Source of the DNA: Macrostomum lignano
Lineage: Eukaryota
Direction of reading: 5' to 3'
Length of the DNA stretch: 64,000 nucleotides
Assembly (NCBI GenBank): GCA_002269645.1
Contig: NIVC01001795.1
Location: 104,559 to 168,558 of the forward strand
The stretch's first letter is position 1. Each line of letters opens with the position of its first letter. The notes beneath the pieces are model-generated. The model made no database searches and was not told where the DNA came from. It saw only the letters and a list, made by a program, of their open reading frames with translations. A program made the position numbers and the translations under genes. Below, one piece after another: positions 1-64,000 of this stretch.

Positions 1-1913
1 AGCTCCTTTGGAAGCGAAAACCAAAGCTGCAGCTCCTCCCATCCCCAGCACCCTGACAGCCAAGGGACTTTTCCCCCAAAGCTCCTTCTCGCCATCTTCG
101 CTTCCCATCCCATCTCGATCCCGCGCTCCGCTTCCTCAAAAATCCCTCCAAGAATTTGCCCATGGCTCCATTTTTTACACACAGCGTGTGGCGAAGTGAT
201 TACAGCGGCAGGCAAAGCTAATTAATAGAGATCTCAGCAGATCCCCGGCACCCTGATCCCCGACCTCGGCCTCTGCTTCTCCGGCCGTGACTTTTCGCTC
301 CGCTCGGGGGCTCCAGCGACGACTTGATAAAATTGATGAGGCGTCCCCAGGGTCCCACAGCTGCCTGATCGACTTTCGAGGAGCTCGAACTTGGGACCCT
401 AGAGTGTACTTTTAGTGACACCAAGGAACACCGCCAGAAATCCGAAATTTGAAACCAAACTTCTTTTCTATTTTCAGACTGGTTTTTTTATAATTAGAGA
501 CAATTCGTTTATTCGGGTTCATCTTTCTCTAAATTTGGGACAGCTCTTCAAGCCCAGGACAGGCGGGGGCCCCATGGCAACCAAAGCCAATTACCGTCTG
601 TAGCAACATTTGATTCCCGTCAAAGATTTTTTGGGAGATTTTAGTTTTCTAACTGGGGCAACTGGGATCGCCGATGATCCCAGGAAAAACTGAGCGGGTG
701 GGGGAAGTTGAGAGCGGAAAGTTTGAAACTAAAATAATCTTTTGCTACAAGAGAAGAGAACCTTGTCCAACACACTTCTGCTCTCTGCACTGCTTTGCTA
801 TTTTCTGTCGTGCTTAAAGAAAATTTCAATGCAATCGAAGAAGCAAGAAGGAGCAAGCAAAGCGGGGAACGCTGCTTTTCCATCACGGGATCCAAACCGG
901 GGCCTGAAGAGGCAAAGCACTTCAATTGGTTAACCAGCAATTCCTGGATTGTCGGGCGGCTCCATCATCCAGTCTCCTCAGCGGCCCTCCTCAGGGAATG
1001 AGAGCGGGTTTTGTTCGAGCACTGGCATATCGATTCCTTCCGAATTTCCTGCACTTTACCGGCGTTGGGACTGGCGCGCTCGAGACGGGAGGAGCCGCTT
1101 GAAAATTTAACACCGAGGGTCATCTGGTTTGCAGCATCCCCCGTCTCGACTGCCTGTCTCTCTTCTAGGAGGAAAATTAACGGCTTCTTCTGCCTGTGCA
1201 ATCGCAGAGCAGCCCCGCCCCCCCCCCCCGCCTCATCTGTGAATTTTAATTCCCAATTCCAACCAATGCCCGACGAAAGCCAGCGAGCTCCCACCGAGGC
1301 TGCGCTGGGGCCGGAAATGCGAATGATTGTGGCAAAATAAATCTGTACAACTCAGATCTGATTTGGGAATTGGGAAGCGCCGAGAACACAGGCCGCTGTG
1401 CTCTGGTGCAGCTTCTCTGAAACTCTGCTCATACTCCCTCATCACTCCAACCTTCGTATTTCTCATGGACTGAAAGAACCTGGCAAGCAAGGCTTCTGCT
1501 CAATCAATTTCTGAATCTGTGAAAAACACACCGATTTGAGTTCAGTCTGGCATTTTTCTGGGTTATTAATTCTGTGCTCTGTGCTGTACACATTTTTTTA
1601 ATAATAATAATATAGTCTTAGTTCATGCAGAGTCTTTGTTTCAGAACCGAGACGAGGTGGGGGACCCCCGCGGTCGTTGCCACAGGGGGTTGTGGAAGTC
1701 CCTGTGTGGCCTCTTGAGTAAAAAATGTTGGGGGTTCGAAGCAAAACAGCGCCATACGCGCCACTGCAGCTCAACTGAGTTCATTCAAAAACAACCCCAC
1801 GAGTTCTCAGGAGCTCCCAGCGTGCGGCGGTTGTAAAACACACGAGCTCAAGTTCAATGGGCAAATGAGCTCATGCTCTATATAAATGCTATGCATGTTG
1901 GTTGTCCTTCGTT

Positions 1914-5140: not shown

Positions 5141-7679
5141 TAGCGAGTGAGTCTGCAACAGTTGATGCCACTGATAGCAGAAGAGTTTTTCGCACAGCGC
5201 GTCCTCCAGGCCAGGGCCGGACCGAAAGTGCCCTCAGTGTGTGCAGAAAAAATTTCTGTTTCATTGGAGCTCAGCCAGATCTGCTGAGCCGAAATTGAAT
5301 TTCTATGCCAGCTTTAGTTATCTGCGCAGCTAGAAAAGGCAGATAGGGGGGCAAGGTAGCAAAGCAGGTACAGGTAAAGGTACCAGGCTTAATCCTTTGT
5401 CCCTGCCTCGAAAGCGGAACGGAAGAGAGAGCTTCCACCTGCGCAATATATTCGTGCAAATCTCCGGGGCAATGATTTGATATTTAGGCTCGGGTTTGGA
5501 TACAATCTCGGGCGGGTAAATCGCTGACTGAGCCTTCAAGAATTCGCTGGTATGTTGCGGTTAAGAAGGCTCCGATCGGAGTGGCCGGCCCGCACTCTGC
5601 AGAGATTTACGCAGCGCTGCACGGAACCCCCCCCCCCGGCAGTTATTTAAGGTGAATTCGCGGCTGCAAGATGCATTTTACCGAGCGCTTGGTTGACATG
5701 GAAAGCACACAACAAGAGTGACTGTCAGGGAAGGGACAGCACTATTTGCGAAGGACGCGTGCTGCTGACCATTAAGATGGAAGAAAAGCGCCGTGCAAAG
5801 TTTGCGTCAGTTCTGGCTGCTTTTTTGACATCAAGGAAGTTGGAAAAAACCAGCCCTTGGCCAAAGTACCGCAGAAGCGCCTGCCCGCCAATTCTCTATT
5901 ATATGTAGGCCTGCAAACTTTCTGAAGTTTATCTCTTATGGCTCCGCTGTTGACGGAACCGCTCGCCTCTAGGGGCAGCAACGTGCCGAAGAAAGGTCGC
6001 TAAAGACGGACGCCCCCCCCCATTTCGCATTTTATAGAGAAGTCGCCGCCAATAAACCGATTTGCACAGCCAGAGCGAAGCCAGAAGCATAAATATTGAC
6101 CGTGGTCGGCTCAATTCGCTGAATTCTGCCAGCTTCACCCAACCCGAAAGCTGATGAGAACCGCCCATCGTGTTGTTAATGGACAGTTTATGGAGAGTTG
6201 AGTGGCACAAGAGGATTAAAATAAGCAGACAGACAGTCAAAGAGAAGCTAAGAATTTGTAAGGGAGCTGCGGTAAGCTGAACCCGAGGTCGCACACTAAA
6301 GGATATGCATTCAAACTCAAACATCAAACACACATCTGCCGTGATCACAATAACTGCAGATCACGCTTCGTTGGTCCATCATGAAAGCAATCGCCAGGTA
6401 ACGTCGAATACGGCTACCTGTAGCCGGGGCAGCTGCCCGAAGATTGACAGAGGACCGCTGGTCCAAGGCAGGGGTCAGGCCAGCCGTCCTCCCCCAGCGG
6501 GAGGTTCAAAGCGTTGCTAATGAGGACTTGGACGTCTGGAAAGAGGTGCAGATGATGGAAGCTGGAGTGATGCCATCGCCAATAATGGCGGGATAGACGG
6601 TTCCGCTTTGCTCCCCGCAAATTCGGATGGAAGCGCACCGCCTCCTCACGGAAGTGGCGGTTGAATCAGTGATGACTGAAATCGTGAGACCACCTGTGGG
6701 GTGGGGGCGGTGATTCTGCTCCTTTTCAATTTTTTGTTGCCTTCATAAAACTCTGGGCTCAGATTTTGGTGTCTCCCTGGTTTCAGTTGCCAAGCAGGTC
6801 ACGGGTTTCAATATTCCGCTCCCCCCAGTCTGTTATCTCGTTACTTTTTTGTTACAAACCCAGTGCAGCATCGACAGATATTTGAAACCGCGAGAGTTCT
6901 GCGCACAAAGACGAGCTGTCACTCCGGTGTCCATCGATCCGCCTTGTGGGTCGCCTTGTTTCTTCATTTGCGCGCCACCTTTTTTGCTTCTGGTCTTTCT
7001 GGTCCTCATCCATCATGACCGACCCCCGTGCAGCAGCCACTGATTGATGAAGCGAACTGGGGCTGTTGCAGTTTCTTATTTTCACACCTGGACAGCTCAG
7101 ACTCTTGAATGACTATTTTATTGGGGAATTTTTTCCCTGACAATCACAGGAAATCCGCTGTCCAGCCTCCCATTCAACATCCTCATTAAGCGGCCGGTCA
7201 TGTTTATGGCTGCTAATTCCCCCAGACATTTTATGACGGGCACGGTTTACAGTTAAATGGCTACTTTTTTGCGGGGTCACCCCGTGCATGCAGATTCGCT
7301 CGTAAAATCATTTAATTGATGTCGAGCAGCCGGGGTGGCGAGTTGGTCACCAGATTCTGCATTTTCTGGCCGGGCTGAAATCCGGACACAGCGCTGAGAG
7401 GGCAGACTAAACAATGGGAGGGCAACCCGGGGACAACGCCCAGAATAAAGGAACACAAAACAGAAATTTTTGACGGCAAATTTTTTGTTTAAAATTACAT
7501 CAATTTTGTTTTAATCTACAAACAGACAAGCGGACTGGGTGTGTCCGCATTTCCGCTTTTCCAATTCACTGAGTTTGAAAACCTGCATTTCATAATTAAG
7601 CCGTTTCAATCATTCATGACTCGGATATCCATTTTCAAATGATTTGCCATCTCTTTGAGAGCAAACTCGCGCACCTCCT

Positions 7680-8302
<623 letters not shown>

Positions 8303-8981
8303 CTTATCAATTACACCGAGCATTTCCGAGTCTCTGTCACACCAAGTTAGCATCCCGCCCTACTCGATATAATATTCGCACTGCAGCTGCCATCTGTCCC
8401 CTCTCCAGCGCTGACCCCCTGTCGCCCTCCATTCGCCCATCCAAAGCCGGGCATAATTGGCCCTCGCCGAGTAGCCCACAAGTGGCTTCGCGACGATGTT
8501 AGGCGAGGAGGCGTCACAGCGCGGGGCTTCCGAGCGCATCAGAGCGGAAGCTGATGGCCGGGACGAGTCCGCCGCCGCCGCCTCGGGGCTCCGGGCGGCT
8601 CATCTTGTGCGCCACTTTGAGCGAAACGATGAACTCAGCTCTGCTCAACCCAGCCTCCCGCACTCGGCGTCATCATCAACTCTGCTAGCGACGCCCCGCG
8701 GTGAGCGCTAGCCGGCGCACCATCTGGTGTCGGGCGGTTTGCGCAACCGCTGAGGGAATCCGGGGCGGGTGCGGGGTGTCGCTAATCCCCCCGACAGCCG
8801 TGATGAGAGCTGGGAGATCGCGTTGAGTCAAGTGTCTGATGTTTTTGTCTGGGCTTTTATTGTTGAGCTTTGAATGAAAGGCGAGCGGCAACCATTGTGG
8901 TCTGCTGCACGCATGGCTGGCCAAGTATATTGGGGGACTCAGACTGTCAGCTCACAGCGTCCTCTGCCGGGGCTGCGACCA

Positions 8982-39077: not shown

Positions 39078-40595
39078 AAGCTGAGGCTACCTGAGCTGCC
39101 ATACCTGAAGCTACCTGAGCTGCCATACCTGAGCTGTCATACCTGAAGCTACCTGAGCTGCCATACCTGAAGCTACCGGAGCTGCCATACCTGAAGCTAC
39201 CTGAGCTGTCATACCTGAAGGCGTGAAGCTACCTGAGCTGCCATACCTGAGCTGTCATACCTGAAGCTACCTGAGCAGCCATACCTGAAGCTACCTGAGC
39301 AGCCATACCTGAAGCTACCTGAGCTGCCATACCTGAGCTGCCATACCTGAAGCTACCTGAGCTGCCATACCTGAAGCTACCTGAGCTGCCATACCTGAAG
39401 CTACCTGAGCAGCCATACCTGAAGCTACCTGAGCTGCCATACCTGAAGCTACCTGAGCAGCCATACCTGAAGCTACCTGAGCTGCCATACCTGAAGCTAC
39501 CTGAGCTGTCATACCTGAAGCTACCTGAGCTGCCATACCTGAAGCTACCTGAGCTGCCATACCTGAAGCTACCTGAGCTGTCATACCTGAAGCTACCTGA
39601 GCTGCCATACCTGAAGCTACCTGAGCTGCCATACCTGAAGCTACCTGAGCTGCCATACCTGAAGCTACCTGAGCTGTCATACCTGAAGCTACCTGAGCTG
39701 TCATACCTGAAGCTACCTGAGCTGCCATACCTGAAGCTACCTGAGCTGCCATACCTGAAGCTACCTGAGCTGCCATACCTGAAGCTACCTGAGCTGTCAT
39801 ACCTGAAGCTACCTGAGCTGCCATACCTGAAGCTACCTGAGCTGCCATACCTGAAGCTACCTGAGCTGCCATACCTGAAGCTACCTGAGCTGCCATACCT
39901 GAAGCTACCTGAGCTGTCATACCTGAAGCTACCTGAGCTGCCATACCTGAAGCTACCTGAGCTGCCATACCTGAAGCTACCTGAGCTGCCATACCTGAAG
40001 CTACCTGAGCTGCCATACCTGAAGCTACCTGAGCTGCCATACCTGAAGCTACCTGAGCTGCCATACCTGAAGCTACCTGAGCTGCCATACCTGAAGCTAC
40101 CTGAGCTGTCATACCTGAAGCTACCTGAGCTGCCATACCTGAAGCTACCTGAGCTGCCATACCTGAAGCTACCTGAGCTGCCATACCTGAAGCTACCTGA
40201 GCTGTCATACCTGAAGCTACCTGAGCTGCCATACCTGAAGCTACCTGAGCTGCCATACCTGAAGCTACCTGAGCTGCCATACCTGAAGCTACCTGAGCTG
40301 CCATACCTGAAGCTACCTGAGCTGCCATACCTGAAGCTACCTGAGCTGTCATACCTGAAGCTACCTGAGCTGCCATACCTGAAGCTACCTGAGCTGCCAT
40401 ACCTGAAGCTACCTGAGCTGTCATACCTGAAGCTACCTGAGCTGTCATACCTGAAGCTACCTGAGCTGCCATACCTGAAGCTACCTGAGCTGCCATACCT
40501 GAAGCTACCTGAGCTGCCATACCTGAAGCTACCTGAGCTGCCATACCTGAAGCTACCTGAGCTGCCATACCTGAAGCTACCTGAGCTGCCATACC
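39078..40595. repeat. 24-bp minisatellite CTGAAGCTACCTGAGCTG(C/T)CATAC (CK2 intron 3)
   Basis: About 62 units; source of the spurious 474-aa and 432-aa ORFs. Confidence 0.98.
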
Positions 40596-40655
40596 CGAGG
40601 TTATATTTCGCAATGATATTTAAAGTATCAAAGTAAGGCGATGTCAAAGGCAAAC

Positions 40656-45060: not shown

Positions 45061-47982
45061 ATGCCAATGGCTAAAAGGAGAAAGAAACAACATGAAGAGG
45101 ATATGAAACAGGCAGCCAAAAAGTCAAGGAAAATGACTAACTGGTAAATACATAATCTAAATGTAGGCTATGAAGATATGATACTGTGTTGATATTAAGC
45201 TATATGCTGCTTGTTAATTGCTGTTTTTTAGGCTTGTTTCTCCCATTGAAGCTAACTCGAATGCTCCATCTGGCATAGCTGCTGCTAACTAAAGCTGACT
45301 TGAGAGAGCTTACTGCCCCTGCCGCTGCTGCCAATGCTGACTATTGCCCCTGCCGCTGCCAATGCTGACTCTACTGCCTTTGCCTTTGCCAATGCTGACT
45401 CTACTGCCCTTGCCACTGCCAATGCTGACTCTACTGCCCCTGCTGCTGCCAATGCTGACTCTACTGCCCCTGCCTTTGCCAATACTGACTTTACTGCCCC
45501 TGCCGCTGCTGCCAATGCTGACTCTACTGCCCCTGCCACTGCCAATGCTAACTCTACTGTCCCTGCCGCTGCCAATGCTGACTCTACTGCCCCTGCCACT
45601 GCCAATGCTAACTCTATTGTCCCTGCCGCTGCCAATGCTGACTCTACTGCCCCTGCTGCTGCCAATGCTGACTCTACTGCCCCTGCCGCTGCCAATGCTG
45701 ACTCTACTGCCCCTGCCGCTGCTGCCAATGCTGACTCTAGAGAGCCTACTGTCCCTGCCACTGTTGCCAATGCCAATGTTGGTGAGACTGCTGTATCTGT
45801 AGCAAAAAATACCATTCTTAGCACTAGCACATCTAATCCATGCGAAATGTAAGATTGCGGATACTGCCAGATTACAATGCAAAATCGGCCTGATTCCATA
45901 TCTGGTTTCAAGCAAGGAGGGAGTGGGAGCAGCAATGCAGGTCGATCATGCCAACTACAATAGTTTGTGCAGTTTGACTGGCTTACATACTGCTCATCTC
46001 AAGGCACTCTTTTTTGTTTTTATTGTCGCTTTGTGGTAAACTCAGATTTGAAGCTATCAAGAAGTTGTGGAGAGAGTACATTCACCTTTTGCAGCTTTTG
46101 TGACTGGAAAAAAGCAATTGAAAAGCTAAAGAAACGTAATAACAGTCATTTTCACTAAGAAGCCTACGAGAAGGTGTACACTCGACTGAAATTACAATCT
46201 ACAATAGGAGCATAATTAGATGCTATTCATTCTCAATAGCTATTACAAAATCGGGAAAATCTGCAATGGGTTTTTAGCTCATTGCGATATCTTATGCGTC
46301 AAGGAATGGCAATAAGAAATAGTAAGGAGATTGAAGGCAATCTTAGACAGCTGTTTATTTTAAGGTCTGAAGCTGAAGATGTGCCTGAACTGCAATCTTG
46401 GCTAAAGGATTCCAAGTACTTAAGTGTTGACATGATTAGAGAGATAATGGAAATCATGGCATATCAGGTTCTCCAAAGTTTGTTACTTGACATTAGCGAG
46501 AAGTCAACAATATTCACATTGATTGCTAATGAATCACGTGACATAAGCTGCAAGGAACAAATGTCAGTGTGCATTTGGTAGGTTTCAAAGCCAGATTTAC
46601 AAGTGCACGAAGACTTCATTGGCATGCATGAACTATGCGGAACTGGAGCTGAAATTATTACTTCAACCTTAAAAGACATTCTAACATGTTGTAACTTGAA
46701 GCTTAGCAACCTAAGAGGTCAAGCATATGATGGTGCTGCAAGTATGAGTGGTAGACTGACAGGCACGGCAACATGCATTAAAGAAGAACAACCACTAGCA
46801 TTGAGTGTTCATTGTGCTAACCACTGTCTGCAGCTGACCCTTCAAAGGTGCACTCGAGAATCAAATGTCATCAGTACCGCGTTAAGTACTGTACAAGAGA
46901 CTGTTGTCTTCATCAAAGCCTCTCCAAAGCGCTTTGACCTATTTCATACCTTGAATGAGTCATTTTCTATTGAGGAAGAGCAGGGCTACAATATTCACAT
47001 GCTCTGCCCAATGCGATGGAATGTTTGTTGTAAGGCAATTTTGTCTGTATTGCACAGCTACAAGTACTTGCTTAACTGCTTGGCCAAAATTGCTAGTGAG
47101 TCATCTGGAGAGAATCAATCAAAGGCAGAAAATCTACAAAAATCCCTTATGAAGTTCTCTGTTTATTTTGGAATTTGCGTAGCGCGAGTGATTTTTACAT
47201 TATCAGAGCAGCTGGCTATTACCAGAGTAAACTGCCTCAAAGACACACTTTTGCGTGAGCGAAGCATGTTTTCAGAGTGGTTTCAGGAAGTAGTCGAGGG
47301 TGCAGAGGCAGTTGGCATTGAACAAAAGCTACTAAGAGAACGAAGGACTCCAATAGGACTCAAACATAAAGGCAATAAAATGCATCCGGTTCAGCATCAA
47401 TCTAACTCTGTAAAAGAATACTATAGGTAGCATTATTATACCACTATTGATGCTTTAGTTTGCGAACTAGACAGTAGATTTGACTAGGAAGCATATAATG
47501 TGCTTAAAGACATAGAGAAGCTTCTTATTCATGTGGCCAATGGAGCAGCACTAATTCTATTCCAGCATCACTGATGGCGTACCATCCTATGGATTGGGAT
47601 GCTGGCAATCTTCAAGCACAGCTATGCTTGCTGCATGGATTTGTGAAGCATTGTTCACCTAAAGTAAAGCTCATTCCAAGGTTGACAACTCTGCATGACA
47701 TATTTACAAAAGAACAGATTCACCAGCCACTTTCAAGATGTATTTGCAATGCTGCATATCTACTTGGTAGTGCCAATGATATATGTCACTGCAAAAAGGT
47801 CATTTTCAGCCCAAAAACAGATCAAGAATTACTTGCGAAGTTCTATGACTGCCAAAACATACAACAGCTTCATGTTACTTAATGTGCATAAGAATCGTAC
47901 TGACAATCTGAACCTCGCACAAGCTGTTTACAAGTTTGTAAGTCGCAACAGCTGTCGGCAAACTTTCTTTGGCAGAGTATGA
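45061..47982 (+). pseudogene. hAT transposase pseudogene (ZMYM1-like/DUF4371 plus hATC dimerisation domain)
   Basis: FDWLTY..LFCFYC, ANESRD (first catalytic Asp is Asn), RGQAYDGAASMSG, VHCANHCLQL, CPMRW, TAKRSFS; several in-frame stops and frameshifts. Confidence 0.9.
45310..45740. repeat. 30-bp minisatellite inside the hAT element (GCTGCCAATGCTGACTCTACTGCCCCTGCC)
   Basis: Reads TAPAAANADS repeats on the transposase strand. Confidence 0.93.
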
Positions 47983-52193: not shown

Positions 52194-53005
52194 CAGGCGC
52201 GTCGCCACCGGGGGGACAGGGGGGACATATCCCCCCCCCCCCAGTAAAAGCTCTGGGGGGGACATGCCAATGCTTTGCCCCCCCCCCCCACCCAACCTTG
52301 TTAGTCGCTGTAGTAATCAATACTTTTTCTTGAGGGAACCAAAATATAGCGCCTTCGGCATAAAAATGAGTGCTTGCGGCGCTAAAATGAGTGCCTGCGG
52401 CGCTAAAATGAGTGCCTGCGGCGCCAAAATGAGTGCCTGCGGCGCTAAAATGAGTACCATGCGGCGCCAAAATGAGTGCCTGCGGCGCTAAAATGAGTGC
52501 CTGCGGCGCCAAAATGAGTGCCTGCGGCGCTAAAATGAGTGCCTGCGGCGCTAAAATGAGTGCCTGCGGCGCCAAAATGAGTACCATGCGGCGCCAAAAT
52601 GAGTGCCTGCGGCGCTAAAATGAGTACCATGCGGCGCCAAAATGAGTGCCTGCGGCGCTAAAATGAGTGCCTGCGGCGCCAAAATGAGTGCCTGCGGCGC
52701 TAAAATGAGTGCCTGCGGCGCTAAAATGAGTGCCATGCGGCGCCAAAATGAGTGCCTGCGGCGCTAAAATGAGTGCCATGCGGCGCTAAATTGAGTGCCT
52801 GCGGCGCTAAAATGAGTGCCTGCGGCGCCAAAATGAGTGCCTGCGGCGCTAAAATGAGTGCCTGCGGCGCTAAAAGGAGTGCCTGCGGCGCTAAAATGAG
52901 TGCCTGCGGCGACAAAATGAGTGCCTGCGGCGCCAAGATGAGTGCCTGCGGCGCTAAAATGAGTGCCATGCGGCGCTAAAATGAGTGCCTGCGGCGCCAA
53001 AATGA
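52194..53005. mobile_element. Orphan hAT/MITE-like left end followed by a 21-bp array
   Basis: CAGGCGCGTCGCCACCGGGGGGACAGGGGGGACAT resembles G/C-run transposon termini; no matching right end or TSD found. Confidence 0.3.
52364..53005. repeat. 21-bp minisatellite AAAATGAGTGCCTGCGGCGC(T/C)
   Basis: About 30 units with ACCATG variants. Confidence 0.97.
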
Positions 53006-55963: not shown

Positions 55964-56781
<818 letters not shown>

Positions 56782-56812
56782 TGATTGATACCAATCCTAC
56801 TCCCAACGACAG

Positions 56813-57090
56813 GCCAAAAGGTGGTCTCCGCAATCTACAAGTTCTGTCTGTCGATGTGGATCTACCTGGGCCTGGTGTTCATGTCCGGCGTCATCTCCAC
56901 AGTTCAGAGTCTGATTGAACGAGGCGCAAAAAAAGTCGACGCCAAGATCGACGCCTCGGACCTGCCGAGTGAGACGGGCGAAGAACCCGATGAAGCTGCC
57001 CATCCAGCATCCAAGCAAAATGTTGTCGAACAGCAGAAAAGTAACGACAACAAAGGAGACAATGGAATCGAGCTGGACGTCGTAACCTGA
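56813..57090 (+). CDS. K2P channel exon 3 (TM4, C-tail)
   Basis: GACAG| acceptor; GQKVVSAIYKFCLSMWIYLGLVFMSGVI...ELDVVT-TGA; total 307 aa. Confidence 0.88.
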
Positions 57091-57282
57091 GCCGTCCTAA
57101 GTTCGAGACCACGATCGGCTGCTATTGACAAATAGACAAAGTGCATTTGTGCTTGCACAATGTCATAAAACAACAAATATTTTTATTTACAAGGCCAAAA
57201 TTGTTGTGTTTTCTTTCTTCTGCCACAAACATCTGGATAGAGTAAGAGCGGTTCCTTGCCTGCTTGGGCTGTGATTTTTATA

Positions 57283-57288
57283 AATAAA
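57283..57288 (+). terminator. Candidate polyadenylation signal for the K2P gene
   Basis: AATAAA in AT-rich sequence about 190 nt after the stop. Confidence 0.5.
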
Positions 57289-57683
57289 TTCTCGTTATTT
57301 ATGATAAAAGACATTATATATGCGTCATGAAAAATTACAAACGGAATTGGACATTAGGCTGTACAACTTCAAATACTTAACAGCACAGTGGGGATCGAGC
57401 CGACAGTAATCCGCTTTGCCAGGCCAAAGCTGCATGAGCAAATAAAATCGATTAATTGTTCTACACGTTCGCACGCTCTGCCTGGTTGTACAGCGCCTGC
57501 CAGGGAGTCTCGTTCCCTCTACTAGGAGAGAAAAGTATTGCACAGAATTGAGGATTGAGCAGGCCATGCATGCAACACTGTCGGAACTCAGTCAGTTCTT
57601 GGGCACTTTGTTTTTTAGTATCTTAGTGCGAAATTTGTCTGAACAGGATTGTCGGACAGAACAGATCGCCAAATCGCTGCATC

Positions 57684-57900
57684 ATGCTGATCCTTCAGCT
57701 GCTGCTGGCCACGCTGCCGGCCGTTGCCCAATGCTTCGACCAGTACCCGAAGCGACTGGCCTTCGAGCTGCCAGACAATGAGGAGTTCTGCTTTTATCAG
57801 GCGTTCGATAAATCAGAGTCGCGCGACTCGTTTCTGCTGCGATTCCGCGTCGTACGCGGCGGCAACAACGATGTGGACTTTCTAGTCCGCTCGCCAACAG
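57684..57900 (+). CDS. p24/TMED family GOLD-domain protein (p24gamma, TMED3/7-like), exon 1
   Basis: Signal peptide MLILQLLLATLPAVA; FELPDNEEFCFYQ and FRVVRGGNNDVDF GOLD motifs; donor G|GTGAGA, phase 1. Confidence 0.93.
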
Positions 57901-57947
57901 GTGAGAACCTCTGAAGTCCGAAGTCCCTCATGTGTACTTGTGTGTAC

Positions 57948-58229
57948 TGCCCGTTGAAAACGAGGGTTAATATTCTGGGCGCTAATTAACTATTAGCCCG
58001 AAGGTTAGTTAACGTAATTTTAGGTGAATAAACGTTACTTGACGTTACTTGACTTTACGGAGGGTAAATATACGTTAATTTCCGAGTTTGTTAACCGAAA
58101 TAACCCACACAGTGTTTGGTTAATTAACGTGAATTCGCTTTTTCCAAAGTTAAACTGCGGTAAATTAACCAACCAAAAGTAACTTTTCGTTAATTTACAT
58201 TCAAGATTAACCCTCGTTTTCAACGGGCA
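57948..58229. mobile_element. MITE-like element, 282 bp
   Basis: Perfect 24-bp TIRs TGCCCGTTGAAAACGAGGGTTAAT (57948-71 and 58206-29); AT-rich interior with many GTTAA motifs; no clear TSD. Confidence 0.7.
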
Positions 58230-58669
58230 TGTTTATTGTCTGACAACGAAAGCGAACAACCGACGATGACTTTACGTTATTAACTGGATATACTTGAAGC
58301 ATCAAACACTCGCATTTGAAGCTGAAAATTCTAGTCTACCTGTACTAACTTTCTGGGGACAGGATAGCTCAACGAATGACGGCAGCAGCTCAGAAGACGA
58401 CTCTCGAGTCACAGACCACGGCTTTCGACTCCGCGATATTTATTTGGGGCCTCTTCACGAAAATTGGCTAAAGTGCGATTCATGCATCAACGAGGGCCAA
58501 CCCCAAGGCACAGAGGGTGTACACGTGTGAGCGTGTGTGCGAGTGCGTGTCGAGTACAGTATCTGCCCGATTGCATGTACTCAAGAGTCTGCGGAATGGG
58601 CGGAGTTGCCTTTCCGATGGCTGTAGGACGATGTAGGACCGAGTCCAGGGTGTCCACAACTTTCCTGTC

Positions 58670-59318
58670 TTTGACTTACTTGACTTAGCTGCAGGGCTGT
58701 CCCGGAGGGGACACAGCGGGAAGGCGCGGGCGCCCATTCCGCTAATCCCTGAACGGCCGACGCGTCGCTATGGACGGTGGTTATCCATAGTCGGCTCGAA
58801 GGCCATGATAAAAGGTTGGTGGGCTACCCTCAAAGGGCGCGGTACCCACCCGGCCGCTCCACCTGACCGGGCAGTAGGCCAATAGAACCCTCAAGGCTGG
58901 CCCGACACCAGGAGGGGGACCGCTTGCTACCGGACTACTCCCCGGCCTTCCAGCCCATCGGCACGGTCAACACCTTAGGCATTAGAGAGTACGTTGGGCA
59001 GTACCACGGCCTGCAGGTTGGCGAGCCAGACCCGCATACCCAAATTCGGCCGAAGCCACTGGATAGGGTCGCCAGCGCCGGAGCCCAGTCTGTCCAGCAG
59101 CCCTAGGGTCTGCCTTGAACACACGCGGGGACGAGTACCCTGGGTCGACTTGCGAGACAGCGTGGGGTCTGCGGCTGCCAGCGGCAAATAGAGGGTGCAG
59201 ACCTCCCACCAGCCTTGACCTGCCAAAGATAGGGGCAGGCGTGAAGCATCGCAGACCGTAGCCCATAGGCCCAGTCTGTCTCATACTTCACTGGCGTGCT
59301 GAATACACCTTCGCGTGC
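58670..59318 (-). mobile_element. Non-autonomous non-LTR retroposon (SINE/SIDE-like) with RTE-type tail and 5' HDV-like ribozyme
   Basis: 13-bp TSD CAACTTTCCTGTC at 58657-58669 and 59319-59331; minus-strand 3' tail TAAGTCAAGTAAGTCAAA; no RT ORF; dense hairpins. Confidence 0.85.
59038..59318 (-). ncRNA. HDV-like self-cleaving ribozyme (predicted)
   Basis: P1 GCACGCG (59318-12) / CGCGUGU (59127-21) with G1.U wobble; P3 GGG/CCC; L3 UACUCGU; P1.1 AC/GU; P2 5' strand ACCCA; J4/2 either CAGAC (C59092) or CGAA (C59048). Confidence 0.75.
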
Positions 59319-59385
59319 CAACTTTCCTGTCAATATTAATTGCATATTTCTACAATCAATAACGTTTGGCATTCGTAACTGACAG

Positions 59386-59825
59386 GCGAGAAGATCTACT
59401 CCAAGCTAAGGGCGCGCTCAGACGAACGGGCGTTCAAATTTATGGGCGGCGGCGCGTACGCCTTCTGCTTCGGCAACGAGTTCTCAACAGTGACACACAA
59501 GGTGGTGCAGTTCGCTCTGGACAGGAGCCGGGCGCCCTCCCTGGCCGAGGAGGCCGGGGTCACCCCGCCCACCGCGCTGACGCTGCTGCAATCGGAGCTG
59601 GAGGCCGTCCACCAGCAGCTCGTGCGGGCGGAGGCGGCCCAGACGATGCACCGGGCCCGGGAAGTCGAAGGCCGAGCATTGAGCGACGACCTCAACAGGC
59701 GGGTTGCGACATTCAGCGGCATCCTGGCGGTTGCTGTGCTGGCCTGCGGACTCGGCCAGGTGGCCGCGCTGAAGGCTCTGTTTGGGGGCGCGGTCCGACA
59801 AGCAAAAATCAGCCAGGTGGCTTAG
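59386..59825 (+). CDS. p24/TMED protein, exon 2
   Basis: TAACTGACAG| acceptor; GEKIY...YAFCFGNEFSTVTHKVVQF, coiled coil, TM segment and tail ending ISQVA-TAG; total 218 aa. Confidence 0.93.
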
Positions 59826-60037
59826 CTTCAATTGGAGTTTATTACACAAAGACTCAACACCTGTTTGCACTCGTGTTTTGGTGTCCTGATTATATTAGAC
59901 ATTACATTTTAGAATTTTGTTTGAATACTATGGTAATGTTATTGTGAATTTAAAGTAAATACTCAACACTGACCATATTCAGTATCATGTTTTGTGATAA
60001 AGAAAAATTTTCTTGTCTATCTTGCCGGAGTTCTAAA

Positions 60038-60220: not shown

Positions 60221-62250
60221 ATCTCTCTGTTCCATCCGGTCATTCTCTAAGATTGAATAAGTTCAGGTTAAAAGTTTCAAAACAGAAATGTAACAATATT
60301 TTGTTCAGCTACAGCATGTCCATATTTGTACTTAAAGTAGCATATTAAGCCAGTGGGTTTTTATCACAGTAAATAAAAATAATCGATGGTTTTTTCGACG
60401 TGGATAAAAAAGCGAACCGACAGAATTTGAATAAAAATTTTAGTCGGATAAAAGAGTCAAAGTCTGCACAATTTCCCCATATTTCCCCATACTTCCCCAT
60501 ATTTTCCCATACTTCCCCATACTTACCCATATTTCCTCATATTTCCCCATAATTCCACATATTTTCCCATACTTCCCCATACTTACCCATATTTCCTCAT
60601 ATTTCCCCATATTTCCCCATACTTCCCCATACTTCCCCATATTTCCCCATACTTCCCCATACTTCCCCATACTTCCTCATATTTCCCCATATTTCCCCAT
60701 ACTTCCCCATATTTCCCCATACTTCCCCATCCTTCCCCATACTTCCTCATATTTCCCCATATTTCCCCATACTTCCCCATATTTTCCCATACTTCCCCAT
60801 ACTTACCCATATTTCCTCATATTTCCCCATAATTCCACATATTTTCCCATACTTCCCCATACTTACCCATATTTCCTCATATTTCCCCATATTTCCCATA
60901 TTTCCCCATACTTCCCCATATTTCCCCATACTTCCCCATACTTCCTCATATTTCCCCATATTTCCCATACTTCCCCATATTTTCCCATATCCCCCATCCT
61001 TCCCCATCCTTCCTCATATTTCCCCATATTTCCCCATACTTCCCCATATTTTCCCATACTTCCCCATACTTACCCATATTTCCTCATATTTCCCCATATT
61101 TCCCCATACTTCCCCATACTTCCCCATATTTCCCCATACTTCCCCATACTTCCCCATACTTCCCCATATTTTCCCATACTTCCCCATACTTCCCCATACT
61201 TCATCATATTTCCCCATATTTCCCCATACTTCCCCATACTTCCCCATACTTCCTCATATTTCCCCATACTTCCTCATATTTCCCCATATTTCCCCATACT
61301 TCCCCATATTTTCCCATACTTCCCCATACTTCATCATATTTCCCCATATTTCCCCATACTTCCCCATACTTCCCCATACTTCCCCATATTTCCCCATATT
61401 TCCCCATATTTCCCCGTACTTCCCCATACTTCCCCATACTTCATCATATTTCCCCATATTTCCCCATACTTCCCCATACTTCCCCATACTTCCTCATATT
61501 TCCCCATACTTCCCCATACTTCCCCATACTTCCTCATATTTCCCCATACTTCCCCATATTTCCCTATACTTCCCCATACTTCCCCATACTTCCTCATATT
61601 TTCCCATACTTCCCCATACTTACCCATATTTCCTCATATTTCCCCATAATTCCACATATTTTCCCATACTTCCCCATACTTCCCCATACTTCCCCATATT
61701 TCCCCATATTTCCCCATACTTCCCCATTTTTCTCCATATTTCCCCATATTTCCCCATATTTCTGCATATTTCCCCATATTTCTCCATATTTCCCCATATT
61801 TCTGCATATTTCCCCATATTTCCCCACATTTCCCCATATTTCTCAATATTTCCCCACATTTCCCCATATTTCTCCATATTTCCCCATATTTCTGCATATT
61901 TCCCCATATTTCCCCACATTTCCCCATATTTCTCAATATTTCCCCATATTTCCGCATATTTCTGCACATTTCTGCCTACTTTTCCATATTTCTCCATATC
62001 TCTCTGTTCCATCCGGTCATTCTCTAAGATTGAATAAGTTCAGGTTAAAAGTTTCAAAACAGAAATGTAACAATATTTTGTTCAGTACAGCATGTCCATA
62101 TTTGTACTTAAAGTAGCATATTAAGCCAGTGGGTTTTTTCACAGTAAATAAAAATAATCGATGGTTTTTTCGACGTGGATAAAAAGCGAACGACAGAATT
62201 TGGATAAATAAATTTTAGTCGGATAAAAGAGTCAAAGTCTGCAACAATTT
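60221..62250. repeat. Direct duplication of about 250 bp unique sequence (60221-60470 and 61998-62250), period 1777 bp
   Basis: ATCTCTCTGTTCCATCCGG...AAAGTCTGC present twice; the copies differ mainly by small indels. Confidence 0.95.
60470..61997. repeat. 10-bp satellite TTCCCCATA(C/T), clean register
   Basis: Direct inspection. Confidence 0.97.
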
Positions 62251-64000
62251 TCCCCATATTTCCCCATACTTCCCCATACTTACCCATATTTCCTCATATT
62301 TTCCCCATAATTCCACATATTTTCCCATACTTCCCTCATACTGACCCATATTTCCTCATATTTCCCCATACTTCCCATATTTCCTCATACTTCCCCATAT
62401 TTCCCCATACTTCCATACTTCCCCATACTTCCTCATATTTCTCCATATTTCCCCATATTTCCCCATATTTCCCATACTTCCTCATTTATTTCCCATACTT
62501 CCCCATCCCTTCCCATACTTCCTCATATTTCCTCCATATTCCCCATACTTTTCCCCATATTTCCTCATACTTCCCCATTACTTCCCATACTTCATCATAT
62601 TTCCCATATTTCCCCATACTCCCCATACTTCCCCATACTTCCTCATATTTCCCTCATACTTTCCTCATATTTCCCCATATTTCCCCATACTTCCCATTAT
62701 TTTCCCATATCTTCCCCATACTTTCATCATATTTCCCCATATTTCCCCATACTTCCCCATACTCTCTACTCCTCATATTTCCCATCAACTTCCCATACTT
62801 CCCCATTTTCCCATACTTTCCCATTATTTCCTCATACTTCCCCATATTTCCCATACTTCCCCATACTTCCCCATACTCCTTCATATTTCCCATATTTCCC
62901 CATACTTCCTCATATTTCCCCATACTTCCCCATACTTCCCCATACTTCCTCATACTTACATTTTTCCCATATTTCCCCATACTTTACCATATTTCCTCAT
63001 ATTTCCCCATACTTTCCCATATTTCCTCATACTTCCCCTATATTCCCCATACTTCCCCATATCTTTCCCATACTTCCTCATATTTCCCCATACTTCCCAT
63101 ACTTCCTCCATTATTTCCCCATATTTCCCATACTTCCCCATACTTTCCCATACTTCCCCATATTTCCCATACTTCCTCATACTTCCCCATACTTCCCCAA
63201 CTTCATCATATTTCCCCATACTTCCCCATACTTCCTCATACTTCCTCTATTTTCCCCATACTTCCCCATACTTCCCCATACTTCCTCATATTTCCCCATA
63301 TTTCCCATACTTCCTCATATTTTCCCCATACTTCCCCATACTTCCCCATACTCATCATATTTCCCCATATTTCCCATACTCCCCATACTACCATATTTCC
63401 CCATACTTCCCCATACTTCCCCATTACTTCATCATTATTTCCCTCATATTTCCCCATACTTCCCATACTTCCCCATACTTCCTCATATTTCCCCATACTT
63501 CCCCATACTTCCCATATTTCCCATTACTTCCCATATTTCCTCATACTTCCCCATATTTTCCATACTTCCCCATACTTCCCCATACTTCCTCATATTTCCC
63601 CATATTTTCCCATACTTCCTCATATTTCCCCATACTTCCCCATACTTCCCCATACTTCCTCATTATTTCCCATATTTCCCCATACTTACCCATATTTTCC
63701 CATACTTCCCCATACTTACCCATATTTCCTCATATTTCCCCATACTTCCCCATACTTCCCCATATTTCCCCATACTTTCCCATATTATTTCCTTCATACT
63801 TTCCCCATATTCCTCATATTTCCCCATATTCTCATACTTACCCATATTTTCCCATTACTTCCCCATATCTTACCCATTTCCTCATATTTCCCCAATACTT
63901 CTCCCTACTTCCCATATTTCCCTCATACTTTCCCATATTTCCTCTATACTTCCCCATATTTCCCATACTTCCTCCATACTTCCCCATATTCCTCATATTT
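62248..64000. repeat. 10-bp satellite TTCCCCATA(C/T), indel-rich copy
   Basis: Same unit, frequent 1-bp indels. Confidence 0.95.

Follow-up and report, generated by a model that had tools for sequence, protein, structure and literature searches.

Does the retroposon that lies in an intron of the flatworm Macrostomum lignano begin with a self-cleaving ribozyme, and does the cleavage site of that ribozyme coincide with the 5′ junction of the insertion? The question is raised by a stretch of 64,000 nucleotides (assembly GCA_002269645.1, contig NIVC01001795.1, positions 104,559 to 168,558 of the forward strand), called the window below and numbered from its first letter. A sequence-only reading of this DNA had proposed a ribozyme of the hepatitis delta virus (HDV) type on the minus strand at 59038–59318. 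We consider it probable that the window holds a 649-bp non-autonomous retroposon derived from a long interspersed nuclear element (LINE), placed by target-primed reverse transcription in the intron of a p24/TMED gene and headed by an HDV-like ribozyme. The presence of the HDV-like hallmarks at the sequence level, at a very low probability of chance occurrence, is supported, and a genuine HDV-like 5′-processing ribozyme very probably stands at the start of the element. The predicted ribozyme would take up the first ~235–281 nt as a nested double pseudoknot.

Ends and origin of the insertion

The ends of the element are marked by a target-site duplication (TSD). A perfect 13-bp repeat, GACAGGAAAGTTG, flanks the insert on both sides and is the only direct repeat of at least 13 nt within 57000–60000. 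As the TSD abuts the insert, the G1 of helix P1 is the first inserted base. The insert is GC-rich inside an AT-rich intron, and the composition changes sharply at G1. The proposal that the ribozyme starts at the 5′ junction of the retroposon is borne out here independently of any fold, by the TSD and by matches to both the 5′ and the 3′ regions of a LINE. For the twister variant of the schistosome element Perere-3, a TSD adjoining the cleavage site was taken as evidence of cleavage in vivo, and the same coincidence was read to mean that the cleaved RNA is the template of retrotransposition (PMC8501958).

The spurious open reading frame (ORF) that runs across the ribozyme, used in a protein database search, led to M. 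lignano gene models (UniRef entries) and to no contigs. In two of these models, P0002 and P0003, the reading frame crosses the ribozyme region, with window positions 59218–58993 matched at 94–97% identity, and stays open into an N-terminal domain, the start of an endonuclease (..LILIQEPW..), a reverse transcriptase (RT), RNase H and a C-terminal zinc-finger-like motif. The partner domains by Pfam are RVT_1 and RNase_H, and the record name of another model, P0010, is endo/exonuclease/phosphatase protein. Element nt 348–471 also come from the LINE 5′ region, as matched by P0004, which falls within the same 94–97% identity group. The N-terminal domain of the LINE is 100% identical across five independent gene models, and for this reason the family is regarded as young.

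At its other end, the element carries the terminus of a LINE 3′ untranslated region (UTR) with a TAAGTCA-repeat tail, which fits the short tandem-repeat 3′ tails of LINEs. Over its final 81 nt the element shares 78% identity with the 3′ terminus of L002, an RT/RNase H contig that closes with ...CTAAGTCAAAGTAAGTCAGTAAGTCAA (end letters given also as TAAGTCAAAGTAAGTCAGTAAGTCAA and ...CCCTGCAGCTAAGTCAAAGTAAGTCAGTAAGTCAA); the ORF of L002 has 59% identity to the RT/RNase H of M. lignano. The six-frame translation of the insert contains no RT. Having a LINE 5′ region and a LINE 3′ UTR and tail but no RT, the 649-bp insert is, as judged by these matches, an internal-deletion derivative of a young M. 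lignano endonuclease/RT/RNase H LINE. No second copy of the element lies within the window. A short interspersed nuclear element (SINE) derived from tRNA, 5S or 7SL RNA was considered and rejected: ARAGORN found no tRNA-like head in 58500–59450, and Rfam gave nothing.

L002 itself is a GC-rich RT/RNase H LINE on an environmental metagenome contig (JGI 3300038379, Ga0394873_0189874). Since it shares 59% identity with the family, and its 3′ end and tail as well, the sample seems to contain DNA of a related flatworm. Many M. lignano gene models (P0001–P0010) are chimeras that read through the LINE, including its ribozyme leader, into UBC9, a G-protein-coupled receptor, a fibrinogen-domain protein or an ESCO acetyltransferase; these fusions are an annotation artefact.

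Predicted fold and its chance occurrence

The complete segment order P1-J1/2-P2-P3-L3-P3′-P1′-P1.1-P4-J4/2-P2′ of the HDV-like nested double pseudoknot is found on the minus strand (Table 1), which is read throughout, with G59318 as nt 1. P1 (GCACGCG/CGCGUGU) has 7 bp including the G1·U198 wobble, in keeping with the 6–7 bp and the cleavage-site G of HDV-like P1 helices. It is followed by an insertion, J1/2, and by the motif GGG-U-AC-UCGU-CCC, in which a 3-bp P3 encloses a 7-nt L3 that fits U-NN-NCGN. P1.1 is present, and both of its strands depart from the usual CC/GG. J1/2 is predicted to fold into four hairpins, a small one at its 5′ side (nt 10–26) and three more, among them CCUGCC/GGCAGG and GGUCUGC/GCAGACC. 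It also holds a run of C whose length, as implied by P0001 and P0002, depends on the copy. Downstream of P1.1, two registers each offer a candidate catalytic C followed by a P2′ strand (C-N-R-A, then P2′), here called closures A (C59092) and B (C59048).

The sequence-only reading had described this anatomy accurately: every coordinate and sequence it gave is right, base for base, on the minus strand. Its view of P1.1 as a compensatory version of CC/GG holds, with the AC of L3 pairing with the GU directly after P1′. The three J1/2 hairpins that it named recur in constrained and unconstrained folds, and both of the closures that it considered possible are there (C59092 with AGAC and UGGG; C59048 with GAAUU and UGGGU).

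Table 1. Coordinates of the element, its predicted ribozyme segments and the host gene, in window numbering (TSD, target-site duplication).
Feature	Window positions	Element nt	Strand	Sequence or remarks
Upstream TSD copy	59331-59319		minus	GACAGGAAAGTTG, 13 bp; ends directly before G1
Retroposon insert	59318-58670		minus	649 bp, non-autonomous, without long terminal repeats; no RT ORF; delimited by TSD and LINE matches
P1, 5′ strand	59318-59312	1-7	minus	GCACGCG; putative cleavage site between 59319 and 59318
J1/2 insertion	59311-59146	8-173	minus	166 nt; constrained and unconstrained folds
P2, 5′ strand	59145-59141	174-178	minus	ACCCA; descriptor match
P3	59140-59138 / 59130-59128	179-191 (with L3)	minus	GGG/CCC, closing the 7-nt L3
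L3	59137-59131		minus	UACUCGU; positions 2-3 (AC) are the P1.1 5′ strand
P1, 3′ strand	59127-59121	192-198	minus	CGCGUGU; U59121 = U198, wobble partner of G1
P1.1, 3′ strand	59120-59119	199-200	minus	GU; G199-C184, U200-A183
P4 hairpin, closure A	59118-59093	201-226	minus	UC..GGCAG(A)CC-CUAG-GGCUGCU.GA; constrained fold
Closure A	59092-59084		minus	J4/2 CAGAC (candidate C59092 = nt 227), P2′ UGGG, 4 bp
Closure B	59048-59038		minus	J4/2 CGAAUU (candidate C59048 = nt 271), P2′ UGGGU, 5 bp
AUG	59037-59035		minus	directly after P2′ of closure B; first in-frame Met of the LINE ORF (MRVWLANLQAVV...) in P0002 and P0003
LINE 3′ UTR terminus	58751-58670		minus	tail TAAGTCAAGTAAGTCAAA at 58687-58670
Downstream TSD copy	58669-58657		minus	GACAGGAAAGTTG; 100% identity to upstream copy
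p24/TMED (GOLD domain) gene	57684-59825		plus	two exons: exon 1 57684-57900, exon 2 59386-59825
p24/TMED intron	57901-59385		plus	GT..AG ends

An exact 12-nt direct repeat, GACAGACUGGGC, is found at 59269–59280 and 59083–59094 (nt 39–50 and 225–236, minus strand). One copy is located in the second J1/2 hairpin, the other over the end of P4, J4/2 and P2′ of closure A; the chance expectation for such a repeat within 281 nt is ~0.002. It may reflect a partial duplication, compete as a decoy for pairing with P2, or be a binding motif.

The candidate can be set against the thousands of HDV-like (theta) ribozymes in the supplementary tables of PMC10879173, which follow the layout P1, J, P2, P3, T, NN, NCGN, P3′, P1′ ending in T, NN, L4, J4/2, P2′. 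In that set, P1 begins with G and P1′ ends in T, the L3 tail UCGU is common, P1.1 covaries (CC/GG, TC/GA, GC/GC) and the forms of J4/2 include CTAA, CTAAC, CGAA, CGAAT, CAGA and CAGAT. The succession U, AC, UCGU in L3, the GU partner and the CAGA(C) or CGAA of the candidate agree with this layout.

For the search of the window, the descriptor consisted of a 5-nt P2, a 3-bp Watson–Crick P3, an L3 of U-N-C-N-C-G-N, a 7-nt P1′ and a 2-bp P1.1, together with a G-initiated, fully paired 7-bp P1 at most 250 nt upstream and a 5-bp P2′ with C-N-R-A 0–2 nt before it. Exactly one match was obtained on both strands of the window (128 kb), at the 59318 site. Chance was estimated by first-order Markov simulations. 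At the composition of the window, the expected number of matches per 128 kb is 0.25 for the core with P1, 0.02 when P1.1 is added and 0.00 for the full descriptor; at the composition of the element, the values are 1.1, 0.09 and 0.02. Because the TSD sets the 5′ end, simulations were also run with the first 7 nt held fixed, and the core with P1 then arose in 5 of 200,000 simulated elements, with P1.1 as well in 1 of 200,000.

Other copies were compared as protein translations (P0001–P0004). In the P2–P1.1 core the sole inferred change is U185C, implied by P0001, at position 4 of L3, which is unconstrained. The same copy implies a lengthening of the J1/2 C-run from 4 to ~9 nt together with G218A, G225A and G268U, and in the P0002 copy the run would have ~8 nt, with a single substitution at nt 210 or 211. 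Whichever P4 model is taken, the bases that could pair with G218 and G225 occupy silent codon positions, where a compensating change would leave the protein unaltered. No record was found for the ribozyme-spanning ORF of the window itself, and a search for related loci with the leader translation and the N-terminal domain gave 148 pattern stretches, none of which was confirmed. The exact 24-mer of the core had no matches in metagenome contigs and the 17-mer core pattern none in viral contigs; the 3′-end 17-mer did match four viral contigs, which were rejected as chance matches without LINE similarity. One distant relative of the LINE, L003 (1–12223, ENA ERZ25073694 contig), is present as head-to-tail tandem copies, with an ORF1 of ~390 aa and an ORF2 of 1181 aa containing endonuclease, RT and RNase H; between these copies the relaxed descriptor and Rfam gave no ribozyme motif.

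Closure, rival explanations and mechanism

The two closures differ in how well they fit the known forms. In closure A, the P4 hairpin of the constrained fold begins directly after P1.1 and ends directly before C59092, and the 5-nt J4/2, CAGAC, has published likenesses in CAGA, CAGAT and CTAAC (PMC10879173). Closure B is the sole closure found by the stricter form of the descriptor (5-bp P2, C-N-R-A); CGAA is itself a published J4/2 sequence (PMC10879173), the P2 of R2 ribozymes usually has at least 5 bp (PMC3774820), and the AUG lies immediately 3′ of P2′, so that in this closure the 5′ leader would consist entirely of ribozyme. In simulated random 3′ sequences, some closure whose P2 reaches 4 bp turns up in 11% of cases and one with a 5-bp P2 in 2.5%; at these rates neither closure is compelling alone, although the lower figure speaks for closure B. 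Each departs from the textbook form, and this weighs against the ribozyme as a whole. Closure A has a P2 of 4 bp only. Closure B has a J4/2 of 6 nt (CGAAUU), against 4–5 nt in the published examples (PMC10879173), and lacks a P4 helix next to P1.1: in its predicted 70-nt P4 domain the bases beside P1.1 are not paired with those beside C59048, which leaves a J1.1/4 of ~10 nt where R2 ribozymes have 0–2 nt. C59048 can also be buried in a GGC-UUCG-GCC hairpin, and the compact closure is completed first during transcription. From the modelled geometry and the order of co-transcriptional folding, we slightly prefer closure A. That the ribozyme is real and the extended closure is the active one, with C59048 catalytic, a 5-bp ACCCA/UGGGU P2, a branched P4 of nt 201–270 and a ribozyme that fills the whole 281-nt leader and ends right before the ORF AUG, is possible and in our judgement doubtful. 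It is rather unlikely that the two nested closures on one P1/P3/L3/P1.1 core are alternative or successive catalytic states that link 5′ processing to cap-independent translation of the ORF downstream; the ribozyme would then be the entire leader of an active LINE, with closures ending at 59084 and 59038, and the 12-nt GACAGACUGGGC duplicate would be part of the switch.

Several further results are neutral or count against a ribozyme at this site. The Rfam covariance models returned no HDV-type or other ribozyme, either for the whole window at the gathering score or for 58500–59900 at E ≤ 10. This null result is expected and is weak evidence, since such models accommodate neither the pseudoknot nor 166 extra nt within P1. 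In energy, the nested portion of the proposed fold lies 2.5–11 kcal/mol above the unconstrained minimum free energy (the pseudoknot being outside the energy model), and the folding z-score of the ribozyme region, −1.0, is unremarkable. The predicted folds of J1/2 show no obvious closing helix (P1.2) that would pinch P1 and P2. At the 5′ ends of the distant LINE relatives L001 and L003–L005 (27–43% identity), a scan with a relaxed descriptor and Rfam gave chance-type matches only and no credible HDV-like motif. One could suppose that the retroposon is real and that its 5′ end merely mimics the HDV-like fold, does not cleave itself and is a structured leader with another role, for example in translation control, in the binding of a protein or as an internal promoter. 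The missing Rfam match and the unremarkable folding energy would suit such a resemblance, relaxed descriptors do yield chance matches at other places in the window and on contigs unrelated to it, and the descriptor was shaped in part after the candidate had been seen (the 0–2 nt gap in J4/2). However, with the 5′ end fixed by the TSD, the part of the descriptor that was set a priori (P3, L3 as U-NN-NCGN, P1′, the G-initiated 7-bp P1 and P1.1) is matched by only ~1–5 of 200,000 simulated sequences, neither strand of P1.1 has kept the usual CC/GG pairing, and the core is constant in the other copies except at the free position of L3; we regard a chance resemblance as quite unlikely. A coincidental 13-bp repeat, with 59318 no true terminus, the GC-rich block longer or differently bounded and the ribozyme off the junction, is very improbable. 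The Markov simulation does give ~3.6 pairs of identical 13-mers 200–3000 bp apart per 64 kb, and the window is extremely rich in repeats. Yet this pair is the sole one in the surrounding 3 kb (57000–60000), its downstream copy sets in at the very base where the homology to the LINE 3′ end and tail breaks off, its upstream copy reaches precisely to G1 and to the switch from AT-rich to GC-rich sequence, and there is no tRNA-like head that would point to another kind of SINE.

An HDV-like ribozyme at the head of a TSD-bounded LINE derivative, which we favour, suggests how such elements would spread. By analogy with R2, L1Tc and Perere-3, a master copy would be transcribed within a longer RNA, possibly a read-through transcript, and the ribozyme would cut 5′ of G1, freeing an RNA with the exact 5′ end of the element. 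HDV-like scission is site-specific, leaves 5′-OH and 2′,3′-cyclic phosphate ends and is lost when the catalytic C is changed to U. The protein of the LINE, working in trans on this deleted derivative, would recognise the 3′ UTR and the TAAGTCA-repeat tail and nick the target, and target-primed reverse transcription would continue to the end of the template, that is, to the processed 5′ end. Reverse transcription to this end would have new copies start at G1 and carry TSDs (13 bp here). On the same analogy, the element may do without its own promoter, as the original proposal had it. The copy in the window is probably an inert insertion, the ribozyme being relevant to transcribed master copies.

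Host intron and comparison with known systems

The p24/TMED gene is complete, and its single intron carries the retroposon in antisense orientation, 55 nt from the splice acceptor. The spliced product has 218 aa and matches Pfam EMP24_GP25L with E = 2.6e-31 over profile positions 2–181/182. Just beyond the downstream TSD, at 58591–58656 on the plus strand, GCGGAATGGGCGGAGTTGCCTTTCCGATG resembles the LINE 3′-UTR motif TTAGCGGAATGGGCG... in the opposite orientation and is followed by two copies of TGTAGGAC; a related but older retroposon on the plus strand may have left its 3′ end here. The same intron contains a unit like a miniature inverted-repeat transposable element at 57948–58229, with 27-nt terminal inverted repeats TGCCCGTTGAAAACGAGGGTTAATATT (96% complementary) around a 228-nt AT-rich interior with TTAA-rich repeats. 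Tandem repeats are extremely dense in the window (for example 55964–56790, 60471–64000, 52363–53005, 7610–8353 and 39229–40653). The arrays near the element are a 0.8-kb (TAGA)n, the 10-bp ATTTCCCCAT over 3.5 kb to the end of the window and a 21-bp repeat present 30 times; further arrays elsewhere in the window appear as long spurious ORFs. A plus-strand ORF of 275 aa at 46603–47430 is like a transposase fragment of the hAT/ZMYM1 kind, with a weak, sub-threshold match to Pfam DUF4371 (E = 1e-3).

The original proposal knew of no description of the family in this lineage. For Macrostomum this stands: no link between the genus and a ribozyme was found in the searchable literature. For flatworms at large it does not, as an HDV-like R2 structure has already been generated for the planarian Schmidtea mediterranea (PMC3774820); flatworm cases in the searchable literature are limited to this structure and the twister-bearing Perere-3 of schistosomes, and the sole paper there to bring HDV-like ribozymes and Platyhelminthes together is on R2. 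The present case would extend the list of non-LTR lineages processed by HDV-like ribozymes to an endonuclease/RT/RNase H LINE and its deletion derivatives in Macrostomum. For M. lignano a transgenesis method is published (PMC5730564). With a young family and transgenesis, the animal could suit in vivo tests of processing and translation, in which the link between ribozyme processing, uncapped 5′-OH RNAs and translation of the LINE ORF could be examined. Recognition of the element would, in addition, help to clean the chimeric M. lignano gene models in UniProt.

The intronic location is shared with the mammalian CPEB3 ribozyme, which is HDV-like and resembles the candidate in the GU after the P1 3′ strand and in its L3 (form U-N-C-A-C-G-U). 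CPEB3 is conserved, single-copy and on the sense strand of its host intron, whereas here the ribozyme belongs to an antisense transposon insertion and the intron site is incidental.

At the 5′ end of non-LTR retrotransposons, HDV-like ribozymes are established for R2 (PMC3774820), L1Tc/NARTc and others. R2 has, as is predicted here, an HDV-like double pseudoknot at its 5′ end, and in several lineages the cut falls precisely on the 5′ junction. A further likeness is that P4 and J1/4 vary, and the active silkmoth ribozymes have J1/2 loops of 216–498 nt, compared with 166 nt in the present element (PMC3774820). Relative to the Drosophila R2 core, CCUCCUCGUGG (PMC5035012), L3 differs at position 2 alone (UCCUCGU there, UACUCGU here), and the P1.1 partner is altered to match. 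In contrast, R2 has a restriction-like endonuclease, inserts site-specifically in 28S ribosomal DNA (rDNA) and is co-transcribed by RNA polymerase I, while the Macrostomum family is a LINE with an apurinic/apyrimidinic (AP) endonuclease, dispersed sites and, in this copy, a 13-bp TSD. The R2 short internally deleted elements (PMC3414825) are likewise non-autonomous internal-deletion derivatives that retain the 5′ ribozyme and the 3′ end for target-primed reverse transcription; they belong to another LINE clade and insert in rDNA, whereas the present element is at a dispersed intronic site.

In the type of LINE, there is a likeness to L1Tc/NARTc of Trypanosoma cruzi (ingi clade; PMC3185411, PMC3383444 and PMC4035085), a LINE of the AP-endonuclease/RT/RNase H type whose HDV-like ribozyme starts at nt +1 and which has, as here, a truncated non-autonomous partner with a common 5′ end. 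L1TcRz is compact (77 nt) and kinetoplastid; the ribozyme of the present element would have 235–281 nt with a 166-nt J1/2, in an animal. L1TcRz doubles as the internal promoter Pr77, so that ribozyme and promoter coexist in L1Tc (PMC3383444). A large structured insertion between P1 and P2, like the one here, is characteristic of the drz-Agam-2 type (PMC4908430). In Agam-2-1 the helix P1.2 closes this insertion and pinches P1 and P2, whereas a string of four hairpins is predicted here; P1.2-type pinching helices accelerate large HDV-like ribozymes, and the self-scission of Agam-2-1 is Mg2+-dependent (PMC4908430), as it is in most HDV-like members. Perere-3 of Schistosoma mansoni (RTE clade) shares with the Macrostomum element a flatworm host, the non-LTR type, a self-cleaving ribozyme at the 5′ end and a TSD adjoining the cut, but its ribozyme is a twister variant in another LINE clade (PMC8501958), whereas the one here is HDV-like. 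Beside these systems, the Macrostomum candidate would add a further instance of a known mechanism, this time in another type of LINE and in a flatworm lineage new to the list.

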